Shown here: piece by piece, positions 6,778 to 31,532 of the stretch
Numbering within the stretch: the first letter of the stretch is position 1
How the letters are laid out: each line of letters starts with the position of its first letter
IMG/VR virus record: IMGVR_UViG_3300033153_013547
Span: 62,001-126,000 of that record
Strand: one strand, 5' to 3'
Length of the DNA: 64,000 nucleotides
The notes under the pieces: generated by a model
What the model was told of the DNA's origin: nothing
Seen by the model: the letters and a program-made list of their open reading frames with translations, nothing else
Database searches by the model: none
Translations under genes and position numbers: made by a program

Positions 6778-6924
6778 CTTATTCTCTCCTTTTAATGGGT
6801 AGTAGTCGTGTTGATGCTCCCCTCTAACTACTATCCCTAAGTTTGGTAACGAATAATAATGGGCTACACCTAACTGGAGTGTGAGTCAGATGTAGCCCAA
6901 AATTGACTGAAAATTGACTGATGT

Positions 6925-7353: not shown

Positions 7354-7555
7354 GAGATAATTCTCCTCTAAACAATGATTTTACCCAGTCAAAACAGGGG
7401 TTATTGAACCAGTTGGGTATGCTGGTTACCCCATGGGTGCTTACGCACCAAAAAAAAACATAGTGATGAACGCGATGGCCCTCCCTAGCCAGCCAGGAAG
7501 GAGCAAAAGGGGGGGAATAACTGACCACATGGCCAATTATTCCCCTAACCAATTG

Positions 7556-10315
7556 TTATTTCTGTTGTTTTCCTCCTTGAAGTTGTCTCAATACTTCTTC
7601 CCAGTTGACATCATCTTGATGTTTTCTGAGAATTACCTTGGCAATTATCTGGGGTAGCCTGGTATTTCTTACTCTGGCTTCTTTCATCAGAGCATCCACA
7701 ATTGCTACTCCTTTGTCTGTTTTCAGCATAGGACAGAAACCTATATTGAGAACAGGTTGAACCAGTAGTGATGCATCATCTTCATTGATGTTTTGCATCA
7801 GCAACTCATCATACACTTTTCTTGCCAACAAAACACCCAGTGATTCTTTGGATTGTCCATCTCCTATGAACAGAAGATTGAAGAACCACTTAACCTTGGC
7901 AATTACTTCTTGTTTGGTTGCTGGAATGGGATTTAGCTTATCAGCAATATCCCATATTTCTACTTCTTTGGGTTCCCAGCCTATACCTGCTTTACCAAAG
8001 GTACCTGTGTGTTCTTTGATAGTTTCCAGGTCTGTGGGAACAAACAATACATGATCCCCATCATTGTCTGTGGCATCACACACATATGGTTCTCTTGATC
8101 CATTTCTGGGATCTATTGCTCCAAGCAGTAGAAAATCTCCTTCACCAAGGGCATGCTTGCAGTGTTGGATGATGGTTACATCAATAGCTCCTTGAAATCT
8201 AGGAGCCTTTTTCTGTAATGCCAGACTAAACTTCCCATCCTTTGGGAAATGAGGCATATTGGCTGCCACAAAATTGATTCTTATACCTGCTTGGCTTGCT
8301 ATTTTGTGTAGTTCTGGGTAGTGATATTCTAAAAATGCTTGTAGTCTGTTAGGATCTGATCTGTGGAATCCTATACATCTGGCATAGAATCCTTTTCTGC
8401 CCAAACATCTGAAAGCCATTCTGGCAATCCGTCTTTGTCCACGGGGGGATGTATCTTGTTTTGCTAGGTGTCCTGCATAGACCTGTAGTCCATAAATCTC
8501 ATCTATTTCTGTGATGAGATCATCTACCTCTGTAATTCCCAGTAATTGTTGGGATACATCTGGCATTACATCTCCAAACCATCTGGCAAGTTCTGTTGGA
8601 GCCTTGACAGGAACAGTCAATCCACCTGTAGCTAAATTGGCAATTCTAACTAGGTGGATTTTATCAGTGTCCACAATCTTTCCATCATGGACTTCGAAAT
8701 TGAGACGATCCAGCAGCTTTTTGCCATCTGTTGTCATCAACTTTCTGGTATATGGGCCATCTCTCAAAACACCAGAAATGGGCACAGGTGGTTCAGCCAA
8801 TGCTGCCACAATGACTTTGGGAACTATACAACCACGTAGGTTGTCTAGCTCTACAACGTCAGGAAGACCATATTTAGCCACTCCTGGACGTAAGCAATCA
8901 GCATTGTTGTGGCTGAATACTACCTTTATACCCCTTTTACGGAGTTCTTCAAGGTCTGGATGGTTCCAGTTTGAAACATCCAGAATGGTAACCTTGCCGC
9001 CCCAACCAATCTTGCTGGCTTTGACGCGGCATTTGATTTTCATAGCAAACGTATGGACTGGAATTACTCCCAGTCTGTTTCTGTCATCTCTGAATTTACC
9101 TGGGAGCATTGTGCACCTAACGTGCTGTGGCTGATCCCAGGACAGCAATTCCATACGTCTTCGTGGAAATCTGATGACGGTCTGGTTGATTTCATCATCA
9201 AATTCCCAATCTTCTTTATCGTTATCTAAATGTAGAACATCCAGCCTTGGACGGCTGAATATCAACTTTCCTCCTTCTTCTCTGATCTCAAAACTGGGGA
9301 TTCTGTCTGGCGACTCCCCTGCGCCAGGTGTTCCAGCAATAGTACGTAGTAGCACAAATTCCATTTCGTGCCATTTTCCTAATGCTGAATCACTGTCGAT
9401 CACCACGCACATTCTGTCGTGGTCCAGATCGACATCTGCCACGGTTCCTGATGCTACAAGAACGGGCCCCACTTCCATGTGGGTTTTGATAACGGAGACC
9501 TGGTGTAGTTCTCCGTTTCTAGTAGATTGTCCGCCATCCTTGGCGAATCTTCTGGGGTTGTATAGGCTATAAAACTCTTTCCAGTCCTTATGACGGGTAT
9601 CAACCAAGATTCCCTCGTATCTTGGTTGCATTAGAGGACCTGGATTTTCCCCGTCACAGATCCACTGTTGAACTGACATTGGCAGACCTCTGAACCTTTT
9701 ATCACCCATTCTTACAATGGGTTTGAAGGTCTTGTCCCCTGAAATGGGGATCAATACATGGCTGCCATCTTTGCCAAATTCAAATACTGCTGGTTTGCCT
9801 ATGATTTTGCACGTAAGATTGGCATAATTCCCACGTGGATTTGCCATAGAAATCATATCCAGAACCAGCAGTAGAGCCTTGATCTTGTCATCAACTGGCA
9901 ATCTGGCAAAGGGTTGCATGAACCAGTCAATGAACCTTTCTGCTGACAACACCATCTGTTGCCCTTTGTGCCAAAATAGCACATGAGCAGCAGAGTAAGT
10001 GTCTTTTGTTCCTTGAATTAGCAGACACTTGCCATTGGCAACTTTGCTAATTGCAGGAACAAACCAAACCATCTTTTTCTTGACAAATCCAGGGACATTA
10101 TTTCCAACAATATGAAACTTTCCTGGACCAAGGTGTTTAGACCAGAATTCTTCTGAATCTCTGATGGTCTGGTTGTCAAAAACAGTTTGTTGCTTGCTTT
10201 GTGGAAGAAACCATTGCTTGGCTACCTCCACAAAATCAACTGTATGACTTGTGAATAATTTCACAAGCCATTGAACAATGTCTAGCACCAATCTGGTGCT
10301 GAATTTACACTCCAT
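7556..10315 (-). CDS. putative single-subunit two-barrel (DPBB) RNA polymerase, YonO/RdRP-like
   Basis: 919 aa; DNDGD + hydrophobic strand (HVLFVP); K-x-P ~48 aa upstream; LGRKGFYARCIG similar to beta' LGKRVDYSxRxVI; VKASKIGWGGKVT similar to the beta K...K motif. Confidence 0.55.
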   Translation of the reverse strand: MECKFSTRLVLDIVQWLVKLFTSHTVDFVEVAKQWFLPQSKQQTVFDNQTIRDSEEFWSKHLGPGKFHIVGNNVPGFVKKKMVWFVPAISKVANGKCLLIQGTKDTYSAAHVLFWHKGQQMVLSAERFIDWFMQPFARLPVDDKIKALLLVLDMISMANPRGNYANLTCKIIGKPAVFEFGKDGSHVLIPISGDKTFKPIVRMGDKRFRGLPMSVQQWICDGENPGPLMQPRYEGILVDTRHKDWKEFYSLYNPRRFAKDGGQSTRNGELHQVSVIKTHMEVGPVLVASGTVADVDLDHDRMCVVIDSDSALGKWHEMEFVLLRTIAGTPGAGESPDRIPSFEIREEGGKLIFSRPRLDVLHLDNDKEDWEFDDEINQTVIRFPRRRMELLSWDQPQHVRCTMLPGKFRDDRNRLGVIPVHTFAMKIKCRVKASKIGWGGKVTILDVSNWNHPDLEELRKRGIKVVFSHNNADCLRPGVAKYGLPDVVELDNLRGCIVPKVIVAALAEPPVPISGVLRDGPYTRKLMTTDGKKLLDRLNFEVHDGKIVDTDKIHLVRIANLATGGLTVPVKAPTELARWFGDVMPDVSQQLLGITEVDDLITEIDEIYGLQVYAGHLAKQDTSPRGQRRIARMAFRCLGRKGFYARCIGFHRSDPNRLQAFLEYHYPELHKIASQAGIRINFVAANMPHFPKDGKFSLALQKKAPRFQGAIDVTIIQHCKHALGEGDFLLLGAIDPRNGSREPYVCDATDNDGDHVLFVPTDLETIKEHTGTFGKAGIGWEPKEVEIWDIADKLNPIPATKQEVIAKVKWFFNLLFIGDGQSKESLGVLLARKVYDELLMQNINEDDASLLVQPVLNIGFCPMLKTDKGVAIVDALMKEARVRNTRLPQIIAKVILRKHQDDVNWEEVLRQLQGGKQQK

Positions 10316-10376
10316 GACACACTCCTCTGTTAGTTAAATAGTAACAGCAACTACTCTTCTGTCTGTGGCACCTCCT

Positions 10377-10772
10377 TCAGAAGTGGCAACCAAGTTCACC
10401 GATGGTAAACTTGTATTTGGGGTTTGTTTTGACGTAGAAGTCCCATATTTCGAGAGGGATGTCATCCAAGAAATTGTCAGTCATCCACTCTTCGAAATCT
10501 TCGCCGTAGTAGTTCTTGGGATCCAGGTACGGCAAAGTTTGCCTGACGAGAGCACGTGCCAGATGTCGCTCCAGTTTGTGCTGGATTATGGTGCCTTCTA
10601 TCTCATCATAGCAGTTCATAGGGTTGAACTCTACTATAGTGCTCCACCCCCCAACCGTGGCTTTCCACCAAGCCGTATATTTCTCAATGGACGACTGGTA
10701 GATAGTCACGAACAACAGTTCAAATAGCACACCACATATGGTGATGCTACCTGGCAACGATGTAAAATCCAT
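10377..10772 (-). CDS. hypothetical protein (start revised from 10982 to MDFTSLP)
   Basis: GGAGTGTG SD before ATG 10772, as at 10315, 11445, 17070; the upstream extension crosses a structured GC-rich element. Confidence 0.6.
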   Translation of the reverse strand: MDFTSLPGSITICGVLFELLFVTIYQSSIEKYTAWWKATVGGWSTIVEFNPMNCYDEIEGTIIQHKLERHLARALVRQTLPYLDPKNYYGEDFEEWMTDNFLDDIPLEIWDFYVKTNPKYKFTIGELGCHF

Positions 10773-10803
10773 CACACACTCCATAGAATATAAATTTGGT
10801 TGA

Positions 10804-10955
10804 AACTCTCTCTCAACCGCCCCTACGGGGGCGTAGCGCCGCAGCAGGCGGGTCAAAGCCGAGCGCGACCGAGCTTGCCGAAGGTCGTGCGTAGTGCGAA
10901 GCAGTGCTTTGATGCGCCTGACCGGCGCGTATAATGAAAAAGTTGAGAGAGAGTT
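10804..10955 (+). other. ~150-nt nested inverted-repeat (rod) element
   Basis: AACTCTCTCTCAAC/GTTGAGAGAGAGTT enclosing GCGCCG/CGGCGC, CAGGCG/CGCCTG, TCAAAGC/GCTTTGA, GCGCGACC/GGTCGTGC. Confidence 0.7.
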
Positions 10956-11050
10956 AGCAAACAGCGTACATGTTGTTAGCATTTTACATATTTATAGCTT
11001 ATTGATATAGTAGCCTTCGTTACTCTTTCTCTCCCCTATAAGAACGGAGT

Positions 11051-11083
11051 AAAAAAATACCTGCCCCCATTACAGGGGCAGGT
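11051..11083 (-). terminator. rho-independent terminator
   Basis: ACCTGCCCCT-GTAAT-GGGGGCAGGT then T7 on minus strand, just after the 11092 stop. Confidence 0.8.
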
Positions 11084-11091
11084 TGGGATGG

Positions 11092-11445
11092 TTACTGTGT
11101 GATGACACGAGTTTCTTGGACTGTGTTGGCTTCGCAGGCTTTACGAAGCCTTTCCCCATCGTTCTGGGAAATGGTCTCGATCAACTTTGCCACTTTGGTA
11201 GCGGTCTTTTTGTCGACTGGAATCCACTTTCCGTTGTCGGGGCGACGAATTCGGATATCGAATCCGTCAGGACTTACAGTAACCATGATGCTGGTTTTGG
11301 AATCATTGGAATTGAGGAAGAAAAACCAGTTAACCTCCTTGTTCCCTGTCAAGCGGATGCCCCCGCTGTTGGCATTGAAATCTCCGACGGGGAACAACCC
11401 CTTTGGGCTGTTGTCGATGATTTCCACGTTTTTAAAGTAGCTCAT
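11092..11445 (-). CDS. hypothetical protein (start revised to MSYFKNV)
   Basis: AGGAG SD before ATG 11445; terminator follows. Confidence 0.7.
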   Translation of the reverse strand: MSYFKNVEIIDNSPKGLFPVGDFNANSGGIRLTGNKEVNWFFFLNSNDSKTSIMVTVSPDGFDIRIRRPDNGKWIPVDKKTATKVAKLIETISQNDGERLRKACEANTVQETRVITQ

Positions 11446-11476
11446 AACGCACACTCCTAAAAGTTTGTTTGTCACG

Positions 11477-11744
11477 CACATCCCGTGACATAGTCTTCAG
11501 GACGAACTGCGGCTTGGCCTAGCCCCGAGCGTTAGCGAGCCCAGGAGAAGAAATGGGAGAGGTCTGACTACCATTAAAATATAAAACATGTCAGACCTGA
11601 AGGGTTCCTATTTCTTCGGATGGGTGTAGGGCTAGGCCAAGGGAGAGCAGTTTGTCACAATGTATGTCACGGATGTGAGATCGTCTAAAGTTGCGCTAGT
11701 CTCCTTTCTTTTCAAATAAATAAGTGGCTAGCGCAACTTTAGAC
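11477..11744 (+). other. ~200-nt imperfect rod plus a 62-nt hairpin; structured ssDNA or ncRNA candidate
   Basis: Five nested stems at 11477-11677 and a 19-bp stem at 11683-11744; mismatches read as G-T on the + strand. Confidence 0.65.
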
Positions 11745-12051
11745 ACCTTATGGATGTCTTTTTGACTTAGAAAAGGCGGTCAGAAATAGAAGAACCTTTC
11801 TCTATCTCCCCCCACCTGGAGAATTGCAAAATTGTCAAAAAGCATCATTGTGTAAACTACAAGCAAGTAATGTGCTACTTATTCTTAGATTGTATCATAT
11901 TGTTCTTAGATTATGCCACATCCTGAACTCAAAGCAAAACAGGGGGCATAGACGTGTTGTATGTGCAGAAGGCGATGGTCTGCCGAAGGCAACACAATGT
12001 AATATTATCTATTAAAGTTGCCCTCAGCAGACCCATCAACATCAATCCAAG

Positions 12052-12222
12052 CTAATCACTTGGGAAAATGGGATACCGTGGATCATCCAGATCCTGGGGG
12101 GGGTCTTCCACTTCATAATGTGGACACCCATCACAATCTGGGCCTACGATATCCGTCAAGCCACACACCGACTCGTTGTCGGATAGGCTAAACCACAGAT
12201 GGACACAGGCCTCTTTTTCCAT
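12052..12222 (-). CDS. 56-aa acidic Cys-containing mini-protein, not in ORF track; last cassette of array
   Basis: AAGGAGG SD supplied by repeat R1; MEKEACVHLW...DDPRYPIFPSD. Confidence 0.7.
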   Translation of the reverse strand: MEKEACVHLWFSLSDNESVCGLTDIVGPDCDGCPHYEVEDPPQDLDDPRYPIFPSD

Positions 12223-12227
12223 CTCTT

Positions 12228-12307
12228 TCCTCCTTCAAGAAAGAATCACTATGCATTCATCATGGCACAATGTAGCTTCATGGCCACCAGCTACTCGGCC
12301 AAGCAGT
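12228..12307 (-). repeat. array repeat R1 (pseudoknot + P3 hairpin + SD)
   Basis: GGCCGAGTAGCTGGTGGCCATGAAGCTACATTGTGCCATGATGAATGCATAG...AAGGAGG. Confidence 0.9.
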
Positions 12308-12631
12308 TTAGTCACGAGGATCTATAACCCCTTCGATTTCATAGTCATCAACCTCTTCGATTTCACGGTCATTATTATAATCATACGAAACTTCATCGAT
12401 CCCCACCCTGAAGAGTGGGGATCCTCCACCACACGCGTCGAGGAACGCCATCTTTACCTGATGGGGATTTTGCCAATCATCATCAGGTTCGATGATCTTA
12501 ACCCCCCGTGTACTTGCAACAATACGGCCACCGATCTCATCAATGGCAAGAAACGCAGGCTTGCCATCATCGGTAACCGACATGAATGCCCCATATGTTA
12601 AATTGAAGTAGTTGTTAAAAAACAGATTCAT
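12308..12631 (-). CDS. acidic hypothetical protein ending DPRD
   Basis: 107 aa, between R2 and R1. Confidence 0.75.
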   Translation of the reverse strand: MNLFFNNYFNLTYGAFMSVTDDGKPAFLAIDEIGGRIVASTRGVKIIEPDDDWQNPHQVKMAFLDACGGGSPLFRVGIDEVSYDYNNDREIEEVDDYEIEGVIDPRD

Positions 12632-12731
12632 CTCTTCCTCCTTAGAAAGAAATCATCACACTTTCGTAGTGATCAAGTGATCGGATGATCACACGTAGCT
12701 TCATGGCCACCAGCTACTCGGCCACACAGCT
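12632..12731 (-). repeat. array repeat R2 (pseudoknot + alternative GTGATC hairpins + SD)
   Basis: Near-identical to R9; shares the pseudoknot with R1/R5/R7/R8. Confidence 0.9.
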
Positions 12732-12887
12732 TTAGTCACGAGGATCCAGATCCAACTCAGGATCCAGATCCAAGACATCAACATCAACCCCCCATCTGCA
12801 ATCTTGTTGATAAACAAGATCGCACTCTTCTCCCTCGGAAAGGAGGCAAGTTATGCCATCCTTCCCTAGGTATTTGCATTTTTTCAT
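12732..12887 (-). CDS. 51-aa acidic Cys-rich mini-protein ending DPRD (start revised)
   Basis: MKKCKYLGKDG...LDLDPRD; the longer ORF-track start reads through repeat R3. Confidence 0.7.
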   Translation of the reverse strand: MKKCKYLGKDGITCLLSEGEECDLVYQQDCRWGVDVDVLDLDPELDLDPRD

Positions 12888-12984
12888 TTTTCTTCTCCCT
12901 TGCCCCAAAGCACAACTCTTTGGGGCAAATCGCCATGCATTCATCATGGCACAATGCAGCCACAGTGCTAACGGCTGCTCAGCT
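12888..12984 (-). repeat. array repeat R3 (pseudoknot + P3 + P4 + SD)
   Basis: GCTGAGCAGCCGTTAGCACTGTGGCTGCATTGTGCCATGATGAATGCATGGCGATTTGCCCCAAAGAGTTGTGCTTTGGGGC. Confidence 0.9.
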
Positions 12985-12990
12985 AAAATG

Positions 12991-13956
12991 TTAAACAGGC
13001 ACAATCGAGTCGCTTCCTGCCTGCAACCTGCGCCTGTTTCCCAACACGATCCCCTCTTTCGTGTTGGCGTAGCAGTAACTGCAAAGGTGTGGGCAGGTGT
13101 TATATTGCCCGATGTCTTTGCTGGCAGCGCATCCGCAGATGCGCCGCTGCCCTGAATCTTTCAGTCCGGCTGGAGTGCCGAAAAGTTTCAGCAGTGCCGG
13201 ATCATTATTTGAGATTCGGAGCAACAGCTCGTCATCGATACATTTGTTTGGCTCGATGCTTGGTTGCTGAAGATCGAGCGGCTCGGCGCAAGTCGCCAAT
13301 TTTAGCCCCCATTGCTGATTCAATCTTACCAAACCTGAAGCTGTCTCACGCATTAAAAATGGTGTGAAATCGAGCCATTTGACGCCCTTTGCCTTTAGGT
13401 TGTTTCGGACTTTACCATAAGCGTCCATATAACTGAAAACCAACTTTTCCGTATATGGATGCAATTGGTCGCCCACTCGTTTAACCTTTTCGAGAAGTCG
13501 CTCAACATTGAGCTCTTCTGTTAAGATTAGAGGATCGAAACGCCAAATCACTCTATGCTTGCCAAGACGGTTGGACAACTCTTGGAATGATTGAATGCGC
13601 GACTCCAGAGGCGGCACATTCGGTTCCAACGCGCCGCCATGGTCTGCGACATAGTCGTTGACCGTGAACTGGAAATAGTAGGCGACGCCTACTTGATCCA
13701 GCTTTTTAAGGTGTTTCATCAAGGGTTTTGGATTCTTACTCCAAAAAACGATGGCGCGCATACGCTCAAAGGAAACAAACTGGGATTTCCCATTAAAAGG
13801 ATTAACCCAGCGTGAATAGCCTTCTTCGAGTCGTCGCATAAACCAATCAGAATAAAAGGCTGGAATATCGGTAGATCGACTAGCCGATATAACTTCCGGC
13901 GCCACAGCCGTATGCACTCCACTGGATGTGGAGATTTCAGTTCTTTTCCACCTCAT
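12991..13956 (-). CDS. DUF1848 family protein (radical-SAM-like, C-terminal Cys cluster)
   Basis: ISASRSTDIPAFYSDWF, FWSKNP, WRFDP, CGCAASKDIGQYNTCPHLCSYCYAN. Confidence 0.88.
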   Translation of the reverse strand: MRWKRTEISTSSGVHTAVAPEVISASRSTDIPAFYSDWFMRRLEEGYSRWVNPFNGKSQFVSFERMRAIVFWSKNPKPLMKHLKKLDQVGVAYYFQFTVNDYVADHGGALEPNVPPLESRIQSFQELSNRLGKHRVIWRFDPLILTEELNVERLLEKVKRVGDQLHPYTEKLVFSYMDAYGKVRNNLKAKGVKWLDFTPFLMRETASGLVRLNQQWGLKLATCAEPLDLQQPSIEPNKCIDDELLLRISNNDPALLKLFGTPAGLKDSGQRRICGCAASKDIGQYNTCPHLCSYCYANTKEGIVLGNRRRLQAGSDSIVPV

Positions 13957-14050
13957 CTACTCTCCCTACCCCAAAGCACAACTCTTTGGGGCAAATCGCC
14001 ATGCATTCATCATGGCACAATGCAACTTCATTGCTATCAGTTGCTCAGCT
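13957..14050 (-). repeat. array repeat R4
   Basis: Same architecture; S2 stem variant GCAACT/AGTTGC. Confidence 0.9.
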
Positions 14051-14057
14051 AATTAAT

Positions 14058-14582
14058 TCACCAATTCTGTTGAACAAACGCCACAATGGCGTCAAAGGTG
14101 TTTAGATCAACATCTTTGACGCCATTGTTGCCAATGATGGTCAACGGAATCCCCAGGCCAAGGGCAATCCTTATCCCCTGGCCTGTACCACCAAGGCCCC
14201 GTTTGTTAGACGGAGCAGCAATTACAGAATCACAACCAAAAATGATTCTGTAATTCCTTCCGTGCAACTTCCTTGCCCCCATAGACAAATATCCTGGGGC
14301 AGGATGATATTTGTCAACGGAAGCAAAGGCCGCCTGGTCGCTCATGGACAAAACATGAACGACCTTGCAAAGGCCCTGGATTTGAGAATTGTACGACGGC
14401 CACGGCACATGACCTTCAGTACTTATTCCCAAATTTCTGGCATGCTCGATGGCAACTTTGTCAATACCATCAGCGCAGCCAGAGACAACTACAGACCCTT
14501 TATCAAGAGATTCTACAATCTCTCTGACAATGCGGATCTGGGGACCAGAGGGGTCTCTGGTCCCTATCACAGCAATCTTCAT
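14058..14582 (-). CDS. SLOG superfamily (DprA/Smf-like) nucleotide-binding protein
   Basis: IAVIGTR, VVSGCADGID, GGTGQGIRIALGLGIP. Confidence 0.75.
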   Translation of the reverse strand: MKIAVIGTRDPSGPQIRIVREIVESLDKGSVVVSGCADGIDKVAIEHARNLGISTEGHVPWPSYNSQIQGLCKVVHVLSMSDQAAFASVDKYHPAPGYLSMGARKLHGRNYRIIFGCDSVIAAPSNKRGLGGTGQGIRIALGLGIPLTIIGNNGVKDVDLNTFDAIVAFVQQNW

Positions 14583-14666
14583 TCCTTTTCTCCTTCAAAA
14601 AAGAATCGCCATGCATTCATCATGGCACAATGTAGCTTCATGGCCATCAGCTACTCGGCCAGGCAG
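14583..14666 (-). repeat. array repeat R5 (no P4)
   Basis: Close match to R1. Confidence 0.9.
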
Positions 14667-14673
14667 ACAATTG

Positions 14674-14934
14674 TTAATGAACAATCACTCCATCTTTCAC
14701 CCTTCTTAGGGCAAAGATGAAGTCATCGCCTTGCATATAGACGATGACCTTTACATCCGAGGTGTCGAAACACTCTATACTGGTCTCGACAAATTTTAAG
14801 GGATCGTTAAGGTACGCATCAGCGTCATTAACATCCAGCACCCATGTGCCGGTTATCGGGAGCCTAAACGCCTCCCGAATGATAACATGTGATCCCGGAC
14901 TTGCCGGGATCGTGGGGTATATAATTCTCCTCAT
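14674..14934 (-). CDS. hypothetical protein (start revised to MRRIIYP)
   Basis: AAGGAG SD of R6. Confidence 0.65.
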   Translation of the reverse strand: MRRIIYPTIPASPGSHVIIREAFRLPITGTWVLDVNDADAYLNDPLKFVETSIECFDTSDVKVIVYMQGDDFIFALRRVKDGVIVH

Positions 14935-14940
14935 CCCCAT

Positions 14941-15032
14941 CTCCTTTGCCCCAAAGCACAACTCTTTGGGGTAAAATCGCCATGTATTCATCATGGCACA
15001 ATGTAGCCTTATGACTATCGGCTGCTCAGTCA
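14941..15032 (-). repeat. array repeat R6
   Basis: S1 variant GACTG/TAGTC. Confidence 0.9.
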
Positions 15033-15039
15033 AGAGAAC

Positions 15040-15423
15040 TTAGGCAGAATCTCTGATCTTCATCAGGATCCTGCCCAGATGGTTCAGTCCAACTCCGTTG
15101 CTTACGCCCCAGAATTGGTCTCCCCACCAATTCTCTTCAACGATCTCCCCCTTTATGGCCTGAAGTTTGGCCATAAAGACAGGATCGCTGAACTTTTTAC
15201 TTACCAGATCCTCCATGATCTGGAGTTTGACCTGATCCCAGTCAGGCCTAAGCCTAACTGTTTTGCCAATCTTTTTGGCAATAAACCCGTTGGTCACACC
15301 AACGAATCTTGCCTGATCAGCAGGATCAGTACACTTTGCCTTCTGGTACTCCACCTCCACACAGTACCCTAACGAATTAGGACACATGTTGGACAGAAAC
15401 CAGAAGATGCCCCTGAATCTCAT
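15040..15423 (-). CDS. NADAR (YbiA-like) ADP-ribose/N-glycosidase
   Basis: FLSN, VEYQKAK, RPDWDQVKLQIM, KF, IVEENWWGDQFWG, GLNHLGRILMKIR; AAGGAGG SD. Confidence 0.9.
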   Translation of the reverse strand: MRFRGIFWFLSNMCPNSLGYCVEVEYQKAKCTDPADQARFVGVTNGFIAKKIGKTVRLRPDWDQVKLQIMEDLVSKKFSDPVFMAKLQAIKGEIVEENWWGDQFWGVSNGVGLNHLGRILMKIRDSA

Positions 15424-15433
15424 AATCACCTCC

Positions 15434-15847
15434 TTAGTGATATATCTCAACATTCAGATCAAGATCAGCCAGTTTATCAGACATCATCTGCCTAACCACT
15501 GGCCAATCCAGACCTCCAAGGCCACATCCAAGCCTGGGGAAGGCTATGGACCTAAAACTCCAGGTTTGGGTGGCAAAATCATCAAGACCATCAGAGATAT
15601 ACTCCAATTTGCTTGGATCTCTCCAATGATCCTTGGTGGGGAACAGTAGAACATTCTCCACCAAGATGACCTTGCCAGGCCTTAGAATGCCTGCAGAGCA
15701 TAGCCTGGCATACTCTGCAAACACCATGGGAAACCTTGCTTTGAACTCCAAGGCAAGACCCTTGCCCATCACGCCAACACAGTTGACGGGATTGACAAGA
15801 ACCTCACATTTGGAATCAAACAGATCCCCCCGCAGCAACAACAACAT
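15434..15847 (-). CDS. macrodomain ADP-ribosylhydrolase (DarG/Poa1/TARG1-like class)
   Basis: GDLF, VNPVNCVGVMGKGLALEFK, FPTKDHW, SIAFPRLGCGLGGLDW. Confidence 0.9.
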   Translation of the reverse strand: MLLLLRGDLFDSKCEVLVNPVNCVGVMGKGLALEFKARFPMVFAEYARLCSAGILRPGKVILVENVLLFPTKDHWRDPSKLEYISDGLDDFATQTWSFRSIAFPRLGCGLGGLDWPVVRQMMSDKLADLDLNVEIYH

Positions 15848-15951
15848 CTCCTCCTCCTTTACCCCAAAGCACAACTCTTTGGGGTAAAATCGCCATGTAT
15901 TCATCATGGCACAATGTAGCTTCATGGCCACCAGCTACTCGGCCAAGCAGT
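15848..15951 (-). repeat. array repeat R7
   Basis: GGCCG-type pseudoknot + P3 + P4. Confidence 0.9.
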
Positions 15952-16155
15952 TTAATCACGAGGATATCTGATGACATCATTCATGGTATCATGGTCAATA
16001 TCAGCAGATATCGTCTTGATTGCTTCCAACTTGATGAAAGCGCACAGAAGTCCCCGCACTTCTTCGATTTCATCAAATAAAATCTTGCTCCGATGAAAGA
16101 GCAAGACTATCGTCACCACAAGGGCGGCGATAATAATCGACATTAATAACAACAT
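15952..16155 (-). CDS. 67-aa membrane-anchored protein ending YPRD (start revised)
   Basis: MLLLMSIIIAALVVTIVLLF hydrophobic N-term; SD from R8. Confidence 0.7.
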   Translation of the reverse strand: MLLLMSIIIAALVVTIVLLFHRSKILFDEIEEVRGLLCAFIKLEAIKTISADIDHDTMNDVIRYPRD

Positions 16156-16258
16156 CTCCTCCTCCTTTACCCCAAAGCACAACTCTTTGGAGCAAAATCG
16201 CCATGTATTCATCATGGCACAATGCAGCTTCATGGCCACCAGCTACTCGGCCAAGCAG
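16156..16258 (-). repeat. array repeat R8
   Basis: Near-identical to R7. Confidence 0.9.
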
Positions 16259-16561
16259 TTACTTCTTCTGCTTTTCAACCCATTCCTTTATCACGTCTCC
16301 GTGACAAGGGCTGGGTTTGCAAAAGCAGACAAGGGTCTTCCCATCAAGTTCAAGCACCCTCCTCTTGAACTCGGGGTCAGACCCCAATCTGCTCAGGAAG
16401 TACTCCCTATACTTAGGTAGGGAGCTACCCCCTGAGCCGGGGAATGGATTCCCAAAATATCCATCCATTCCCCTACCAGCCCTTCCTATGTAAACATAGG
16501 AAGGGTCATCGCGCCACCCCTTAGGGGCGTCGCGAATATTAATAACGTTGATAGGCAACAA
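16259..16561 (-). CDS. DUF4326 family protein
   Basis: YVYIGR...FGNPF...LDGKTLVCFCKPSPCHGDVI; AAGGAGG SD favours TTG at 16561 (ORF track start 16594). Confidence 0.85.
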   Translation of the reverse strand: MLPINVINIRDAPKGWRDDPSYVYIGRAGRGMDGYFGNPFPGSGGSSLPKYREYFLSRLGSDPEFKRRVLELDGKTLVCFCKPSPCHGDVIKEWVEKQKK

Positions 16562-16629
16562 AATCACCTCCTTTTGTTGCCGGTCAATCGACACGGTTTC
16601 GGCAGACCACGTGTCATTCTGCAGACAAA

Positions 16630-17070
16630 TTACATGAAATCTCCCACAATCAGGTCACCCTTCTTGTGGGAGATTTTCTTCCCCCTTGGTCGGGGCGCAG
16701 GCACCTTCTTGGCGGGCACCTTCTTGGCAGGTGCCTTAACCTCTCTGGGCCACTTGCAATAATGCTTGACTGGCCCAGAGGCAGGCCGCTCTGCTGTTGC
16801 TGCCACCACTTCCACAGCAACAGCCTTTTTCACAGTAGGCCCAACCACATCATGGATGAGCCTACTGCAACACAGCTGCTTCCTGAGACGAAGTATTGCC
16901 TCGCCTCCGTCCACGCCTGTGGGGATCGTGCCCCTCCAACCGGGAACACGTTCCCCGTTGAGGTAGGCTTCACAGTACTGAAGCCCACCCCTTTCAAACA
17001 GGGGGGAGAATTTAATCTTTACCCTCTTCCCCCCCAACAAAATGTCAGGGGGACGAATCAAATTAGGCAC
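16630..17070 (-). CDS. hypothetical protein with basic PAKK tail
   Basis: AAGGAG SD, GTG start; KAPAKKVPAKKVPAP repeat. Confidence 0.65.
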   Translation of the reverse strand: MPNLIRPPDILLGGKRVKIKFSPLFERGGLQYCEAYLNGERVPGWRGTIPTGVDGGEAILRLRKQLCCSRLIHDVVGPTVKKAVAVEVVAATAERPASGPVKHYCKWPREVKAPAKKVPAKKVPAPRPRGKKISHKKGDLIVGDFM

Positions 17071-17143
17071 AGTAACACACTCCTTTCTGCCAGGTATATC
17101 CTGGATCAGATGAGCAGTTTATTGTCTTGCTCAGGACACAATG

Positions 17144-17464
17144 TTATAAACCAAGTTCCTCCCTGACACGATCCCTATTGACGGGATAAATGTTTATCTC
17201 ATCTATCCCATCAATAGAAACCCTGAACAATTGCCAGGGGCCCCCATCTGCTGGGATGAACCAGTATAGAGGATTATACCCCTTGGCTTCCTCAAACTCC
17301 TTCGCTGCTCTTCCGAACAGCGAATTCTTCCGGGGATTTTGTTGCCAAACTTCTCCCCAAATCTGCCCTATTGGCTTGGCAGATTTGAGCATCACCCCAG
17401 AAATGGTGGCTCTTGGTGCGGAGCAGACCGCCTTACGCACCAAGGCAATAATTTTCTCTTCCAT
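17144..17464 (-). CDS. hypothetical protein
   Basis: SD from R9. Confidence 0.75.
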   Translation of the reverse strand: MEEKIIALVRKAVCSAPRATISGVMLKSAKPIGQIWGEVWQQNPRKNSLFGRAAKEFEEAKGYNPLYWFIPADGGPWQLFRVSIDGIDEINIYPVNRDRVREELGL

Positions 17465-17562
17465 TTTTCCTCCTTAGAAAGAAATCATCACACTTTCGTA
17501 GTGATCAAGTGATCGGATGATCACGCGTAGCTTCATGGCCATCAGCTACTCGGCCATACAGT
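17465..17562 (-). repeat. array repeat R9 (R2 type)
   Basis: Near-identical to 12632-12731. Confidence 0.9.
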
Positions 17563-17645
17563 TTAGTCACGAGGGTCCAGAATGTCACCATGGCTTGTTG
17601 TCAGCCAGAAATGGCTTTCAACCCATAGACCAATGCCCCAACTGA

Positions 17646-18611
17646 CTAAATTCCCCGTGCCCAGAGAGCGTTCCGGCGCGCTTCTTTTTCGGCGCGCGCC
17701 TTTTCAACTCGTTCGCGAAGCTCCGGGGGAACATAGCCCGGCGTGTCGGGCGGTTCCGTAGCAGACACCGTAAATGTCTGCAGGAAAACGCTCGCGTACT
17801 CTTCCACCTGTTCGAGGGACAGCTCGACCCCCGAACGCAGCTCTTTGGGCAACTGGTAATCCAGATCAACTTCCACCACTCTCTCGGCGTGAACCGCGAT
17901 GTGTGGCGGGAGGCTGCCTTGCGTGGTATAAACGTCCTTCCCCATCACGTCATCCACTGCGGCATTCTCCACGACTGGCGTTCCCTTTGTCACCAGTCCT
18001 ATTTTCTCCAGATACGTCACGAACGCCGGATGGCGCGTGACGATGATGTTCCCATTTTCCATGGGAACAATATCCGACGCCCTGAGCAAATCTGACGCGA
18101 TGAAAGAGTACGCCTTGAGCTCACCGCTCGCGTACTCTTCCACCTGTTCAAGGGTCAGTTCGACCCCAGAACGCAGTTCATCGGGTAAATCGAGCGTGAG
18201 CTCGATTAACTTTTCTGAATACACCGCCAAGTGCAGGGGAATATACCCCTGCGTGGTGTAAACAGACCTTAAGGGACCGAGAGGTATCCCCGTCATGTCA
18301 TGACGGCTCCGCACATTCTTGAGCCACGTCACACGCCGTGCGCTGCCGAATGTGTGGATCTTCGCAAAATAACGCGCCACTGCGAGGTGGCGCGAAACGA
18401 CAAGATCTTTCGGCGGATAAATCTCCACTAGTCGGACAACGCGCGACTCGCCCTCCTCCAGGTAATTCCCGTAGGAATCCTGGACGGAACCCGAGGCTAT
18501 CGTCGTTCGATAGCCGTGCTCGATATCTATGGGGCCGCACCGGCGACCCTTGAAGTCCCTGATTTTCTCAAGCCTAGCCTCATTCCAGGCTTGAAACTCC
18601 TTCTCATTCAT
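17646..18611 (-). CDS. tandem two-domain Csx16-like (Cas_VVA1548) putative ring nuclease
   Basis: Two repeats of VV(S/T)RH...G(Y/S)(I/L)PxH(L/I)A...LPxELRSGVEL(T/S)LEQVEEYA. Confidence 0.7.
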   Translation of the reverse strand: MNEKEFQAWNEARLEKIRDFKGRRCGPIDIEHGYRTTIASGSVQDSYGNYLEEGESRVVRLVEIYPPKDLVVSRHLAVARYFAKIHTFGSARRVTWLKNVRSRHDMTGIPLGPLRSVYTTQGYIPLHLAVYSEKLIELTLDLPDELRSGVELTLEQVEEYASGELKAYSFIASDLLRASDIVPMENGNIIVTRHPAFVTYLEKIGLVTKGTPVVENAAVDDVMGKDVYTTQGSLPPHIAVHAERVVEVDLDYQLPKELRSGVELSLEQVEEYASVFLQTFTVSATEPPDTPGYVPPELRERVEKARAEKEARRNALWARGI

Positions 18612-18668
18612 ATCAATCTCTCCTTGCCCTGCACTAGCCGCGGCAGGGCTTCGCGGTTGTGTGTTACC

Positions 18669-18953
18669 CTATGCAAACTGCACGATGTACGCCACGGGCG
18701 TGCTGGCGTATTCGCGCACTTGCTCAAGGGTCAGCTCGACCCCCCTCATCTCCGCCGGAATATCCAGCGGAACTTCGATCACTCGCCGCGCATGCACGGC
18801 GAGCCGAAGAGGAAGAACGCCGAAAACGTTCTTCCCCATTACATCGTCGACCGTGGCATGTGCCACGATGGGCGTGCCTTCCGGCACTAACCCTATCTCG
18901 ATCAAATACGTCACCAATGCTGGGTGACGCGTAACAACAATACTTTTATTCAT
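18669..18953 (-). CDS. csx16: Csx16-like (Cas_VVA1548) putative cOA ring nuclease, 94 aa (start revised)
   Basis: IVVTRHPA...GVLPLRLA...LDIPAEMRGVELTLEQV fits the Csx16 pattern hhsRHpgA...GtLPxhLA...LdlPxexRGxELs. Confidence 0.75.
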   Translation of the reverse strand: MNKSIVVTRHPALVTYLIEIGLVPEGTPIVAHATVDDVMGKNVFGVLPLRLAVHARRVIEVPLDIPAEMRGVELTLEQVREYASTPVAYIVQFA

Positions 18954-19048
18954 CTCTTCTCCTTTACCCCAAAGCACAACTCTTTGGGGCAAATCGCCAT
19001 GTATTCATCATGGCACAATGCAGCCACAGTGCTGTCGGCTACTCAGCT
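18954..19048 (-). repeat. array repeat R10
   Basis: Same architecture as R3. Confidence 0.9.
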
Positions 19049-19086
19049 GTGGGGGGCGATCCTGTTTCGATGTTGACAGGATCCAT

Positions 19087-19117
19087 AAAAAAAGAGAGAG
19101 GCCCGAAGGCCCCTCTC
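19087..19117 (-). terminator. rho-independent terminator (copy 1)
   Basis: GAGAGGGGCC-TTCG-GGCCTCTCTC + T7. Confidence 0.85.
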
Positions 19118-19120
19118 CGA

Positions 19121-19210
19121 TGATGCCTATATTTCTCCTTTCCCGGCATCAGGGAGTTTCACCACTATGCAGGTGACGCATACATTTTGTTTATCCAGAT
19201 GTAAACTGGA
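19121..19210 (-). ncRNA. candidate structured RNA, three tandem H-type pseudoknots (copy 1)
   Basis: TCCAG/CTGGA + TACAT/ATGTA; TGC/GCA + TCACC/GGTGA; TCCC/GGGA + TGATGCC/GGCATCA; covaries with copy 2. Confidence 0.55.
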
Positions 19211-19234
19211 ATCCGGTTTTGAAAGGGGAGGGGG

Positions 19235-19690
19235 TTACTCTATTATTGGGAGGACATCCCCTTCTTCAAAGTCATACTGCCACGGATCATAATCCGTGGC
19301 AAGACCAATTGCTGTGACCATGTCTTTTGCGACGATCACAGCAAACCCCTGAAATTCCTCGCCCCCATCGTAGGGGACGAGGAACCCCCCGGGTTCCTTT
19401 TCTTCCGGACACTCCGGAAGGTTGGGGGCAAGTTTTCTTGCCCCCAACTGAAGGGTCCTCCAGACGGAGGTTTTTACTCCGTCTAGAAACCCTGACTCCC
19501 CACGTAAAATGGGGTAAAACACGCTAGTCGCTGCAGCGGCCAGCGTGCTCGCTCCTCCGGCTCTCATGAGCCGGAAGTACGAAATATTGCCGCTAACAGC
19601 AACTGGGCACCACGTCCTGTGGAGGGGCAGACACTGCCCATACCCCTCCACAGGGCGTAAAAAGACCGATAGCCAAAAAATTTTAGCCAT
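19235..19690 (-). CDS. hypothetical protein, paralog of 19972..20442 (start revised)
   Basis: MAKIFWLSV...FRLMRAGGA...LVPYDGGE. Confidence 0.75.
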   Translation of the reverse strand: MAKIFWLSVFLRPVEGYGQCLPLHRTWCPVAVSGNISYFRLMRAGGASTLAAAATSVFYPILRGESGFLDGVKTSVWRTLQLGARKLAPNLPECPEEKEPGGFLVPYDGGEEFQGFAVIVAKDMVTAIGLATDYDPWQYDFEEGDVLPIIE

Positions 19691-19696
19691 TCCCAT

Positions 19697-19787
19697 CTCC
19701 CTTACCCCAAAGCACAACTCTTTGGGGTAAAATCGCCATGTATTCATCATGGCACAATGCAACCACAGTGCTAACGGCTGCTCAGCT
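19697..19787 (-). repeat. array repeat R11
   Basis: Same architecture as R3. Confidence 0.9.
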
Positions 19788-19825
19788 GTGGGGGGCGATC
19801 CTGTCTCGATGTTGACAGGATCCAT

Positions 19826-19857
19826 AAAAAAAAGAGAGAGGCCCGAAGGCCTCTCTC
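19826..19857 (-). terminator. rho-independent terminator (copy 2)
   Basis: GAGAGAGGCC-TTCG-GGCCTCTCTC + T8. Confidence 0.85.
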
Positions 19858-19860
19858 CGG

Positions 19861-19952
19861 TGATACCTATATTTCTCCTTTCCCGGTATCAGGGAGTTTC
19901 ACCACTATGCAGGTGACGCATACATTTTGTTTATCCAGATGTAAAAACTGGA
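19861..19952 (-). ncRNA. candidate structured RNA, three tandem pseudoknots (copy 2)
   Basis: TGATACC/GGTATCA compensatory change; a 2-nt insertion falls in a loop. Confidence 0.55.
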
Positions 19953-19971
19953 ATCCGATTTTGAAAAGGGG

Positions 19972-20442
19972 TTACCCTATTATCGGGATAATATCCCGAT
20001 AATCCGTAGCAAAGTCGTCTCGCCACAGATCGTAATCTATGGCGAGATCAATCGCCGTGGTCGCATTTTTTGCGACTACGACGACAAACCCCTCGAATTC
20101 GCCCCCATCGTAGGGGACGAGCACTTTGCAGAATACCCCGGAACGTTCCGGGATATCGGGGGCAAGCAAAGCTACCCCCACCTGCATTGTTCTCCGGACA
20201 AATGTTACCCACTTGTCTAGAGAATTTACCTCGCTCAAGAGCCAATCCGCATTTGTTAAAATGGGATAAAATATACTAGCCACTATAGCGGTTAGTATAT
20301 CCGCTCCTCCGGCTCTCATGAGCCGGAAGTGCGAAACGCCGTCGCTTTCAGCGACGACGTTCCATGACTCATTATCGGGGGGGTTTTCTTTAAACCCCTC
20401 GATCTTGTCGAGTAAAACTGACAGCCAAAAGATCTTGGCCAT
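19972..20442 (-). CDS. hypothetical protein, paralog of 19235..19690 (start revised)
   Basis: Shared motifs; SD from R12. Confidence 0.75.
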   Translation of the reverse strand: MAKIFWLSVLLDKIEGFKENPPDNESWNVVAESDGVSHFRLMRAGGADILTAIVASIFYPILTNADWLLSEVNSLDKWVTFVRRTMQVGVALLAPDIPERSGVFCKVLVPYDGGEFEGFVVVVAKNATTAIDLAIDYDLWRDDFATDYRDIIPIIG

Positions 20443-20537
20443 CTCCTCCTCCTTTGCCCCAAAGCACAACTCTTTGGGGCAAATCGCCATGTATTCATCA
20501 TGGCACAATGCAACTTCATTGCTATCAGTTGCTCAGC
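20443..20537 (-). repeat. array repeat R12
   Basis: R4-type pseudoknot + P3 + P4 + AAGGAGGAGG. Confidence 0.9.
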
Positions 20538-20628
20538 GTCATATCGCAGATTTCCTAACCGGTGTCTGCCAACCGGCCACAGCCAAAATAGTGACTGTGG
20601 CCACCGCCTACGTTGCGGAGGCGGTGGT

Positions 20629-27604: not shown

Positions 27605-28439
27605 TAAAACATTTGCCATATCTGGATTGGGTAGCATATCCCCACGTCATTTGGAAGCCGTGAAGCATATTGGGGGCATCATTCTTGACGTACATGATCC
27701 TGATTGGAGCAAATCATATTTTTATGGAAGGCAGGCAGTCTTTCACAAATCCATTGAAAGCATGCTTGAAAAATCAGAAGCAGAATGGTTTGTCATTTTG
27801 TCTCCCAGTAAATACCACTTTTCTCAATCTATGAAAGCCCTGGATCTGGGCAAGAAAGTTATAGTAGAAAAACCTGCTGCTATGACTCTATATGACGTTC
27901 TACAATATTCTGGACGAGAAATCTATACCGTATCACAACTACGATATCTCGACGACATTATCAACATCAAAAATAAAATATCTACAGGTCACCATGATGT
28001 AAACATCAAGATCATAGCACACAGGCATCCCATAACCATGGCAAACTGGAGACATGACATAAATTGGTCTGGTGGGCTAATGTATTTCGTAGGCATTCAT
28101 TACATAGACTTAGTCACTTGGTTGTTTGGCAAGATGGAAAAATTAGAACAAGTTACTTGGCTAAACAAACAAAAGTGCCAATTTAGTATGGAGTTAGAAA
28201 GAGCCACAGTCAATGCCAGCTTTGAAATTACTGAAACCCAACCAAACCACAAGAGCATGATCATAGATGATATAGAAATAGATTTGGCTGCCAAGTTTTA
28301 TGATTTACATTGTTATTTATATGAAGATATAATGGCAGGACATGGCATTCATCCAATGGATGTATATCATACTATGGAGATTATTCATAAGATTAATGGC
28401 TATGCCAATGAAGGATATGGCTACAATGCTTCTAAATAA
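27597..28439 (+). CDS. Gfo/Idh/MocA oxidoreductase (WbpB/WlbA-like)
   Basis: [33 protein letters not shown]. Confidence 0.85.
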
Positions 28440-29389
28440 GCAGCTATATTTTCATGGGCATTAGCAGGGGGAACAATAATTTCTAAATTACCAGCCCTAA
28501 ATGACCTAATAGCATTGGCCAAATACTCACTACTATATCCCACTATTATACCATAGCCTGTGTCTATAATTGCTTGGTGTTCTGTGTTACTACGAGGAAT
28601 AATTACTGTCTTACCCAACCAATAAGCCTCACGTTGAATGCCGCCGGAATCTGTTGCAACAAATTCAGAATTGACTAACAGAGAAACAAGTCTCTTGTGT
28701 GATATAGGATCTATAAGCCTTATATTTTTGGGTATCAATAAACCAAACTCTTGTATTCTTGCCTTGGTTCTTGGATGAATGGGCCAAACAAAACTATATT
28801 CCTCACAAGTTCCTATGGCATGCAAAACAGATGATAGTCTTGCTCTATTGTCCACCAATTCTGCTCTATGAAGGGTTATAAGATTTTCATTACTTGTGCT
28901 ATAAGGATCCAAATCATATGACATAATTTTGTCATAGACAGGATCTCCAACAATAGTGGAATTATGCAAACCTTCCTTAGATAAATTCCTTTGACAATAT
29001 TTGTCAGTGCACAACAAATGATCTGCCATTTTATCCACAGACATTCTAATCCTTTCTTCTATGGCTTCGTTGTCATAACACCTCATTCCTGCTTCAATAT
29101 GTACTAACGTTTTGTTGCACATTTTAGCACAAATAGCTCCAGCAAGAGTGCTTCTTGTGTCTCCTAAAACACAGATGATTTTGGGATTGATATCATTGAC
29201 AATTTCTATTGCTGCATCTATGGTTTCCCCCAAGCTGGTTTTCAGCAAATTGTAATCACAATTCACTGCATCATGTATGTCATTGAGATTAGCATCATAG
29301 TGCTGACCAGTATTTACTATAATACTAGCCCAAAGTCTGGATAATTTCAATAATTCAGGACGTGTGCCTATGATTGTTAGGACTTTCAT
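28421..29389 (-). CDS. UDP-N-acetylglucosamine 2-epimerase (WecB/WbpI-like)
   Basis: GTRPE, TGQHYD, LGDT, HIEAGMR, TLHRAE, HPRT, TDSGGIQREA. Confidence 0.92.
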   Translation of the reverse strand: MKVLTIIGTRPELLKLSRLWASIIVNTGQHYDANLNDIHDAVNCDYNLLKTSLGETIDAAIEIVNDINPKIICVLGDTRSTLAGAICAKMCNKTLVHIEAGMRCYDNEAIEERIRMSVDKMADHLLCTDKYCQRNLSKEGLHNSTIVGDPVYDKIMSYDLDPYSTSNENLITLHRAELVDNRARLSSVLHAIGTCEEYSFVWPIHPRTKARIQEFGLLIPKNIRLIDPISHKRLVSLLVNSEFVATDSGGIQREAYWLGKTVIIPRSNTEHQAIIDTGYGIIVGYSSEYLANAIRSFRAGNLEIIVPPANAHENIAAYLEAL

Positions 29390-29398
29390 TTGTGTCTC

Positions 29399-31531: not shown

Positions 31532-31532
31532 G

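Follow-up and report, generated by a model that had tools for sequence, protein, structure and literature searches.

A Csx16-like gene pair, one product a single-chain tandem, in a candidate counter-defence island of an uncultivated jumbo-phage contig

The Csx16-like gene pair and its products

IMGVR_UViG_3300033153_013547 is a 261,124 bp contig of an uncultivated jumbo phage. The 64-kb stretch of it analyzed here (the window) carries, on its minus strand, two adjacent genes for Csx16-like proteins: a small gene encoding a 94-aa single-domain protein and a large gene encoding a 321-aa protein in which two such domains are joined in one chain (the fusion). Csx16 is a ring nuclease specific for cyclic tetra-adenylate (cA4), modelled as a dimer with its ligand at the interface (PMC12409355). 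We describe the two phage-encoded relatives, their neighbourhood, and their possible role against the cyclic oligoadenylate (cOA) signal of type III CRISPR-Cas.

A preliminary description of this DNA, made from the letters alone, had listed both open reading frames (ORFs) and a phage context free of CRISPR arrays and cas genes, and it was accurate on each of these points. Both ORFs are present (Table 1). The window is phage DNA: among its products are PhoH, a portal protein, and two intein-bearing proteins, namely a class II ribonucleotide reductase (LAGLIDADG intein) and a second large protein. The portal protein is approximately 27% identical to the portals of jumbo Bacillus phages of the 0305phi8-36 group. 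A search of the window for CRISPR-like arrays found none, and a scan of about 60 window ORFs revealed no Cas family besides Csx16. When the GC-rich island that holds the pair (described below) was compared by blastn, and the small protein by tblastn, with 50,697 deposited phage genomes, there were zero matches.

The two genes are arranged head to tail with a 57-nt spacer between them, and a Shine-Dalgarno sequence precedes each. The gene upstream of the small gene is closed by an intrinsic-terminator-like hairpin and T-run, and no minus-strand terminator-like site was found between the small and large genes, so the two look like a single transcription unit of their own.

Both products match Pfam PF09652 (Cas_VVA1548; cutoff 25 bits) and the PADLOC Csx16 models. 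The small protein aligns with profile positions 2–89 of 91 (E=1e-14, 54.9 bits; PADLOC, 1.9e-13), and the fusion matches over two stretches (E=8.7e-13, 48.7 bits; PADLOC, 1.3e-10). The hidden Markov model (HMM) of the domain places the N-terminal domain of the fusion at E=6.8e-14 and the C-terminal domain at E=1.9e-29. The assignment of all three domains to Csx16 in the preliminary description thus agrees with both profile collections. Neither protein matched a PHROGs family, and a sub-threshold Pfam match to an AtzG-like family was disregarded.

The preliminary description had also read the fusion as two diverged copies of the domain behind an N-terminal extension of about 65 aa. By BLASTP, the small protein is 64% identical to fusion residues 186–274 (E=3e-33) and 41% identical to residues 68–162 (E=2e-15); the two copies and the extension are therefore real and far above chance. 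In the AlphaFold2 (AF2) model of the fusion (mean predicted local distance difference test score, pLDDT, 79.9; predicted template modelling score, pTM, 0.72), the beta-alpha order of the small protein occurs twice, at residues of about 69–177 and 188–285, which accords with the proposed tandem pseudo-dimer architecture. The pTM was reached despite about 60 poorly modelled residues, which suggests that the two domains are confidently placed relative to each other and form a fixed two-domain body. The linker between them is modelled as an extension of the last strand of domain 1. Residues 19–64 of the N-terminal extension have pLDDT <50. This extension matched no family in Pfam or PHROGs, and a search for it elsewhere found it only in the fusion itself and in its ortholog, P0002.

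The AF2 model of the small protein (mean pLDDT 96) has the order strand-helix-strand-helix-strand-helix-strand-helix-strand, and its conserved residues lie after strands 1 to 4 or before the last helix, with T/S-R-H following strand 1, the conserved His following strand 2, and R-G-x-E preceding the last helix. In Rossmann-like and CARF-like folds, the ligand site is normally at the C-terminal ends of the strands; on this model, the conserved residues would be placed at the ligand site.

An ankyrin relationship was rejected. The PDB sequence matches were designed ankyrins, over about 28 residues, and stem from a GxxPLHLAA-like motif; positions 27–62 of the family profile match designed ankyrins at E of about 1e-10 through a DV-G-x-V-G-x-x-P-L-H-L-A-A-like stretch. 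There is no Pfam Ank match, and the AF2 model is a beta-alpha fold at pLDDT 96, on which grounds we set the relationship aside. This look-alike stretch in the Csx16 profile could mislead automated annotation.

Orthologs, conserved residues, and other tandem fusions

Searches of 5.8 billion and 1.84 billion proteins revealed a sole full-length relative of the fusion, P0002, at 68% identity. Its gene adjoins that of P0005, a 94-aa protein 79% identical to the small protein. This second pair resides in the metagenome-assembled genome (MAG) AUK090, on contig JAGGVC010000034 (locus L001), beside a serine recombinase and a divergent helix-turn-helix repressor, and lies at the start of a long co-directional block (L001, positions 6831–18703). 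The block is an integrated phage-like element, and the position of the pair at its start suggests early expression. Further downstream, the block encodes an SMC/AAA_15-like ATPase, a UvrD helicase, an HNH protein, and a lytic transglycosylase. The gene order of the MAG pair is the reverse of that in the window; the pair has stayed together although its order has changed, which points to a functional link and not to synteny by descent.

Ratios of nonsynonymous to synonymous substitution rates (dN/dS) were calculated by the Nei-Gojobori method between the window pair and the MAG pair (Table 1). Both genes are under purifying selection. The linker, which is 23% identical to that of P0002, is the sole segment of the fusion that is not below 0.35, and the N-terminal extension is the most conserved.

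The conserved set used here comprises the 20 positions at which 253 single-domain relatives show at least 90% conservation, numbered according to the family HMM. Its polar positions are T5-R6-H7, H29, R67, G68, and E70, and G42 and P45 are also conserved. The small protein and its orthologs retain 20/20 positions. In three CRISPR-linked Csx16 proteins (L011, L012, and L013), every polar conserved position is present; the S/TRH, His29, GxLP, and LRGxELxLxQ motifs are common to the small protein and CRISPR-linked Csx16, and overall identity to L011 and L013 is 30–34%. The N-terminal half of the fusion retains 14 of the 20 positions and the C-terminal half 15. Both halves keep (S/T)RH, G42, P45 (of GxxP), R67-G68, and E70, and each carries TTQ inserted ahead of G42 and one additional Ser within R-S-G. 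P0002 is more eroded, having lost P45 and R67-G68 from its N-terminal half and G42 and E70 from its C-terminal half.

The nearest relatives of the small protein are PF09652 proteins of about 90–150 aa with approximately 55–68% identity, many of them on phage contigs. The nearest ESM Atlas clusters named Csx16, one of which has 374 members, are 95–100% viral where taxa are recorded. A pattern scan returned 69 loci in IMG/VR and 7 in a set of one genome for each of 185,579 species, a ratio that is biased because the patterns were built from the viral clade. Two of the genomic matches are CRISPR-linked Csx16 genes, one adjoining Cmr1-6/Cas10 in Rheinheimera and the other adjoining RT-Cas1 and a CARF protein in Psychrobacter. 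In a published survey, Csx16 was present in 68 type III loci, whereas only 2 of the 28,114 phage genomes encoded it (PMC12409355). Our results suggest that Csx16-like proteins form a large, mainly viral metagenomic family, far richer in viral members than that count. In metagenomes, it is not unusual for phages to carry Csx16-like proteins, nor is the fusion the only one of its kind.

Indeed, at least seven other two-domain PF09652 proteins, of 196–280 aa, occur among 150 listed representatives: P0123, P0128, P0129, P0138, P0139, P0158, and P0193. Two further candidates, P0127 and P0150, were rejected as false positives arising from PASTA repeats and low-complexity sequence. Wherever the context of a tandem fusion could be read, the gene is on a phage or mobile-element contig and does not adjoin cas genes: P0123 is next to a tyrosine integrase, P0138 lies within a Mu-like contig, P0193 within a phage contig with an SPP1 portal, and P0158 in a phage-like contig that also encodes Dam methylase and thymidylate kinase. 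In a tree of the domains (88 columns, 123 rows), which is poorly resolved and was used for the grouping of the window domains only, the three window domains cluster with their MAG orthologs (SH-like approximate likelihood ratio test support, 84), apart from the other tandem fusions. On this tree, tandem fusion seems to have arisen several times.

The halves of these proteins have decayed in a complementary manner. In six of the seven, the half that has T-R-H, His29, and an acidic residue 70 carries W, M, K, F, F, or Y in place of Arg67, and the half without TRH/His29 retains Arg67-Gly68; the pattern was also checked by eye against the sequences. Were the half picked at random in each fusion, agreement in all six would have a probability of about 0.016, a figure that weakens if there were fewer independent fusion events. 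Read most simply, the pattern predicts a composite Csx16 active site, with TRH, His29, and Glu70 contributed by one subunit and Arg67 by the other. A homodimer would then have two composite sites; a fused chain would need one, and the other would be free to decay. P0002 fits the rule, with SRH and Glu70 in its N-terminal half and Arg67-Gly68 in its C-terminal half. In the window fusion, both motif sets are still present, minus His29.

Composition of the pair and the surrounding island

The gene pair has a guanine plus cytosine (GC) content of 0.563, an observed/expected CpG ratio of 1.26, and a GC content at third codon positions of 0.65, versus 0.38–0.41, 0.42–0.46, and about 0.30–0.38, respectively, in the phage backbone. 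The MAG pair is nearly identical in composition (GC 0.567, CpG ratio 1.25) and lies in native-looking 56%-GC DNA. The GC- and CpG-rich, acquired segment of the preliminary description is thereby confirmed in its composition, and acquisition from a GC-rich source, with incomplete amelioration, is well supported by these base frequencies. With only 68–79% identity between the window and MAG pairs, neither pair was the immediate source of the other.

The pair belongs to an accessory island (Table 1) with a GC content of 0.46–0.55, versus about 0.38–0.41 elsewhere. Its other genes encode a DarG-like macrodomain, a NADAR protein, a DprA/SLOG protein that matches the ShosA and PsyrA antitoxin models, DUF4326 and DUF1848 proteins, a small predicted membrane protein, and two paralogs. 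Judging from these family matches, several neighbours appear to be related to the antidotes or off-switches of defence systems, the part that Csx16 plays in type III CRISPR. The region at 12.9–20.5 kb thus looks like a counter-defence island, a context that favours a counter-defence role and does not prove it. Homologues of the other island genes were absent near the Csx16-like genes of 68 other viral loci. The paralogs matched nothing in Pfam, PHROGs, or PADLOC; their true starts are probably at MAKIFWLSV..., past the leader cassette.

This leader cassette, of about 95 nt, precedes each gene unit of the island in eight copies and consists of three hairpins followed by a Shine-Dalgarno sequence and the ATG. 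The cassette before the small gene includes the hairpin CCCCAAAGAGTTGTGCTTTGGGG at 18967–18989. Across the eight aligned copies, hairpin 1 shows compensatory changes at three pairs, hairpins 2 and 3 are invariant, and the z-score of the fold is −3.87. Rfam gave no credible family for the leader, and its 23-nt hairpin is in no other IMG/VR contig. The leader resembles the mobile promoter/stem-loop cassettes of T4-type hyperplastic regions. Since it lies before the coding start, several listed ORFs start later than their mechanical start, the macrodomain at about 15847 being an example. A second repeat of 98 nt, 96% identical between its two copies (12635–12732 and 17467–17564), adjoins, on the upstream side, a 106-aa gene (start 17464) and a small gene near 12630; this repeat seems to represent another kind of regulatory cassette within the island.

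Table 1. Features of the gene pair and of the island around it. Positions are those of the window. dN/dS values compare the window pair with the MAG pair P0002/P0005.
Feature	Position	Strand	Evidence or remark	dN/dS
Small gene, 94-aa single-domain Csx16-like protein	18669..18953	-	ATG at 18953; Pfam PF09652, PADLOC Csx16	0.18
Large gene, 321-aa single-chain tandem Csx16-like protein	17646..18611	-	Pfam PF09652, two matched stretches	0.27 (overall)
N-terminal extension, residues 1-65	18417..18611	-	Helix at 3-22, then poorly modelled stretch; 81% identity to P0002	0.15
N-terminal Csx16-like domain, residues ~66-170	18102..18416	-	SRH, His29->Asn, 6-residue loop insertion, R-S-G-V-E	0.30
Inter-domain linker, residues ~171-185	18057..18101	-	Least conserved segment	0.65
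C-terminal Csx16-like domain, residues ~186-285	17757..18056	-	TRH, His29->Asn, TTQ insertion, R-S-G-V-E	0.24
C-terminal tail, residues 286-321, and stop codon	17646..17756	-	Charged helix at 296-318 (AF2)	0.32
Leader cassette before small gene	18954..19060	-	Three hairpins, then Shine-Dalgarno; one of 8 island copies	
Intrinsic-terminator-like hairpin and T-run ending the gene upstream of the small gene	19093..19118	-	11 pairs, 7 G-C, then TTTTTTT	
GC-rich accessory island	12886..20550	-	Gene units each with repeated leader; composition, Pfam, PADLOC	
DUF1848, reverse-transcriptase-associated kind	12991-13956	-	PADLOC 1.3e-44	
ShosA/PsyrA-like DprA/SLOG protein	14058-14582	-	PADLOC antitoxin models: ShosA 1.6e-10, PsyrA 8.4e-06	
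NADAR	15040-15453	-	Pfam	
DarG-like macrodomain	about 15434-15847	-	PADLOC DarG 6.3e-52; Pfam Macro	
Predicted single-pass membrane protein, ~67 aa (MLLLMSIIIAALVVTIVLLF...)	15952-16155	-	Behind one leader copy, between DUF4326 and macrodomain genes	
DUF4326	16259-16594	-	Pfam	
Two paralogous genes	19235-19825, 19972-20508	-	DNA repeats between them 73-76% identical	
Leader hairpin copies	12903-12925, 13969-13991, 14949-14971, 15862-15884, 16170-16192, 18967-18989, 19705-19727, 20457-20479	-	Each copy with ~70 nt upstream of it	

Elsewhere in the window, on the plus strand, lie the class II ribonucleotide reductase with its intein and LAGLIDADG homing endonuclease (41225–44446) and, directly ahead of the portal region, a 965-aa protein that contains an intein splicing domain (53323–56220). 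A long co-directional block for sugar modification or glycan synthesis occupies about 28400–40200 on the minus strand. Its families include UDP-GlcNAc 2-epimerase, PGA_cap, hexapeptide transferases, a glycosyltransferase, a GFO/IDH/MocA oxidoreductase, and an MptE-like protein, as well as a radical SAM protein that matches prokaryotic viperin models at 1.6e-13.

Proposed function and comparison with known systems

Jumbo phages are known to be threatened by type III CRISPR (bioRxiv 10.1101/2022.06.20.496707). We favour the reading, at a probability of roughly 0.55, that the pair is part of a counter-defence island and that both of its products are aimed at the cOA signal of type III CRISPR-Cas. 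Because it keeps all 20 conserved positions, the small protein is most likely an active cA4 ring nuclease, a prediction in which we have reasonable confidence; its use in vivo against the type III messenger is also probable, if somewhat less so. It would most likely act as a homodimer, with cA4 bound in a cleft where the two subunits meet and cleaved there into linear products. With cA4 destroyed, the CARF effectors of the host would never be activated, that is, the protein would be an anti-CRISPR that works by signal destruction, as AcrIII-1 does. The head-to-tail domains of the fusion, which are of the same lineage, may form an equivalent cleft within one chain. The fusion would still bind the ring, and would cut it slowly, or at one site only, or cut a ring of different size, so complementing the fast symmetric small enzyme. 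Since His29 is lost from both halves and (S/T)-R-H, Glu70, and Arg67-Gly68 are kept, the role of the fusion is probably altered; together, the changed histidine, the loop insertions, and the conserved N-terminal module of its own point to a modified task. This task might be cleavage that is slower or confined to one site, action on another ring, binding alone, or docking to a partner; among these we favour a complementary role directed at the ring.

Several observations weigh against this reading. The two proteins are within the PF09652 family but outside the narrow CRISPR-linked equivalog group NCBIfam TIGR02620, which the small protein matches at 18.6 bits, below the trusted cutoff of 46.35, and the fusion does not match. 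Foldseek returned nothing below E=0.04, whether the PDB was searched with either model or BFVD with the small one, and no solved Csx16 structure exists for comparison. The preliminary description had looked to AcrIII-1 for a structural match, and this was not borne out: the Foldseek matches to AcrIII-1 (6scf) were non-significant, at E 0.7–0.8 (probability 0.23–0.28; target-normalised TM-score 0.45), AcrIII-1 is absent from the 50 PDB matches shown for the small model, and the CARF protein Cad1 was only a non-significant match. A Pfam scan of 49 ORFs immediately next to Csx16-like genes in related viral loci gave no Cas family and mostly no family match at all, and these neighbours offer no independent functional hint. 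Finally, His29, which is present in CRISPR-linked Csx16 and 95% conserved in single-domain relatives, is replaced by Asn in both halves of the fusion.

It is on this histidine that the most serious rival rests, namely that the small protein is the sole enzyme and the fusion is non-catalytic, either a cOA sponge or an adaptor or regulator whose N-terminal module binds a partner. In P0002, His29 has become Arg in the N-terminal half and Asn in the C-terminal half, and Pro45, Gly42, Arg67-Gly68, and Glu70 are missing from one half or the other as well; such erosion is no less compatible with a binder that lacks catalysis than with an enzyme. The strong conservation of the N-terminal extension would also fit a docking role, and Csx15 provides a precedent, being a cA4 sponge with little or no cleavage (PMC13148439). 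Set against this, the RH motif is present in 4/4 halves of the fusion and P0002, both halves of the window fusion keep Arg67-Gly68 and Glu70, and Csx15 was not seen in phages in that study, whose authors argue that sponging would cope badly with the large amounts of cOA that type III systems produce (PMC13148439). We consider a binding-only fusion doubtful but the foremost competitor of the ring-directed role.

The preliminary description had proposed that the fusion handles a different or asymmetric messenger. This is only one option, since the loss of His29 and the erosion of P0002 suit single-site cleavage or binding alone equally well. Extended to the pair, the proposal would have both proteins target a signal other than cA4 (cA3, cA6, or a messenger of the type used by cyclic oligonucleotide-based antiphage signalling systems, CBASS), with the fusion specialised for a ring that has no twofold symmetry. 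SAVED acquired asymmetric ligand contacts through domain fusion. So did Can1 (PMC7969007), and the loop insertions of the fusion lie by the conserved motifs (TTQ, the extra Ser in R-S-G, and the 6-residue loop of the N-terminal half). Even so, we regard this as unlikely: the characterised Csx16 is strictly cA4-specific even at high enzyme concentration (PMC12409355), the small protein is fully canonical, and the complementary decay in other fusions is explained more simply by the loss of a redundant second site. Less probable still is that the two genes are recently captured passengers with no counter-defence role, or regulators of a non-immune phage or host process. The composition of the pair is strongly foreign and the island looks like captured cassettes of mixed composition, but both genes are under purifying selection and occur together in two different mobile elements; each unit has the island's own leader cassette and a Shine-Dalgarno sequence, and the close family is overwhelmingly viral.

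A more far-reaching version of the ring-directed role, which we hold only tentatively and as rather improbable, is that recurrent phage-specific pseudo-dimers reveal a Csx16 site formed in trans, and that the window fusion has kept both sites, replaced the histidine, gained its highly conserved N-terminal module, and taken on a new job. In concert with the canonical small enzyme, the fusion would then be a new type of anti-defence protein, which cuts or traps cA3, cA6, or an asymmetric messenger, or docks onto a host component. Viral ring nucleases are the main known viral route against type III CRISPR cOA signalling, and, to our knowledge, essentially one family, AcrIII-1, has been studied in this capacity so far. 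The concept of a viral ring nuclease is established; the fusion architecture, the active-site prediction, and the island context are new. The pair offers a natural side-by-side comparison of a symmetric dimer with a single-chain pseudo-dimer, and the way in which fused halves decay predicts, in testable form, the make-up of the active site. The island, for its part, seems to gather relatives of antidote parts (DarG, ShosA/PsyrA, NADAR, and Csx16). If the favoured reading is correct, both proteins could be useful tools to switch off cA4 signalling.

Among known systems, Csx16 itself is closest: its profile matches all three domains, the small protein is of similar size (about 90–110 aa), and each domain has a predicted five-strand beta-alpha fold. 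The window proteins differ from it in being phage-encoded, with no nearby cas genes and 30–34% identity to the CRISPR-linked members, and the fusion differs further in that its two domains are covalently joined, both of its termini carry additional segments, and His29 is missing. AcrIII-1/Crn2 (DUF1874) would share the strategy but is a different family; the DUF1874 profile had no Pfam match among the window proteins even at E up to 1, and the similarity to 6scf is non-significant.

The architecture of the fusion has its parallels among host proteins. SAVED is a single-chain pseudo-dimer derived from CARF-like domains. Can1, compared with Can2, is likewise a single-chain pseudo-dimer derived from a dimeric cOA-binding protein (PMC7969007). 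As in the fusion, a normally homodimeric cyclic-oligonucleotide domain was duplicated, fused, and diverged, with one half partly decayed. Can1 and SAVED are, however, host sensors or effectors, whereas the fusion is a stand-alone ring-nuclease fold with no effector domain, borne by phages and mobile elements; the SAVED family was absent from the Pfam and PADLOC results, and the likeness is one of evolutionary logic only. Csx15, a cA4 sponge and slow ring nuclease, is likewise a small protein, has a CARF-like fold, is grouped with Csx16 and Csx20, and can neutralise cA4 mainly by binding. Although it is a different family, forms head-to-tail filaments, and is not found in phages (PMC13148439), it might serve as a model for the possible role of a fusion that has lost its histidine.

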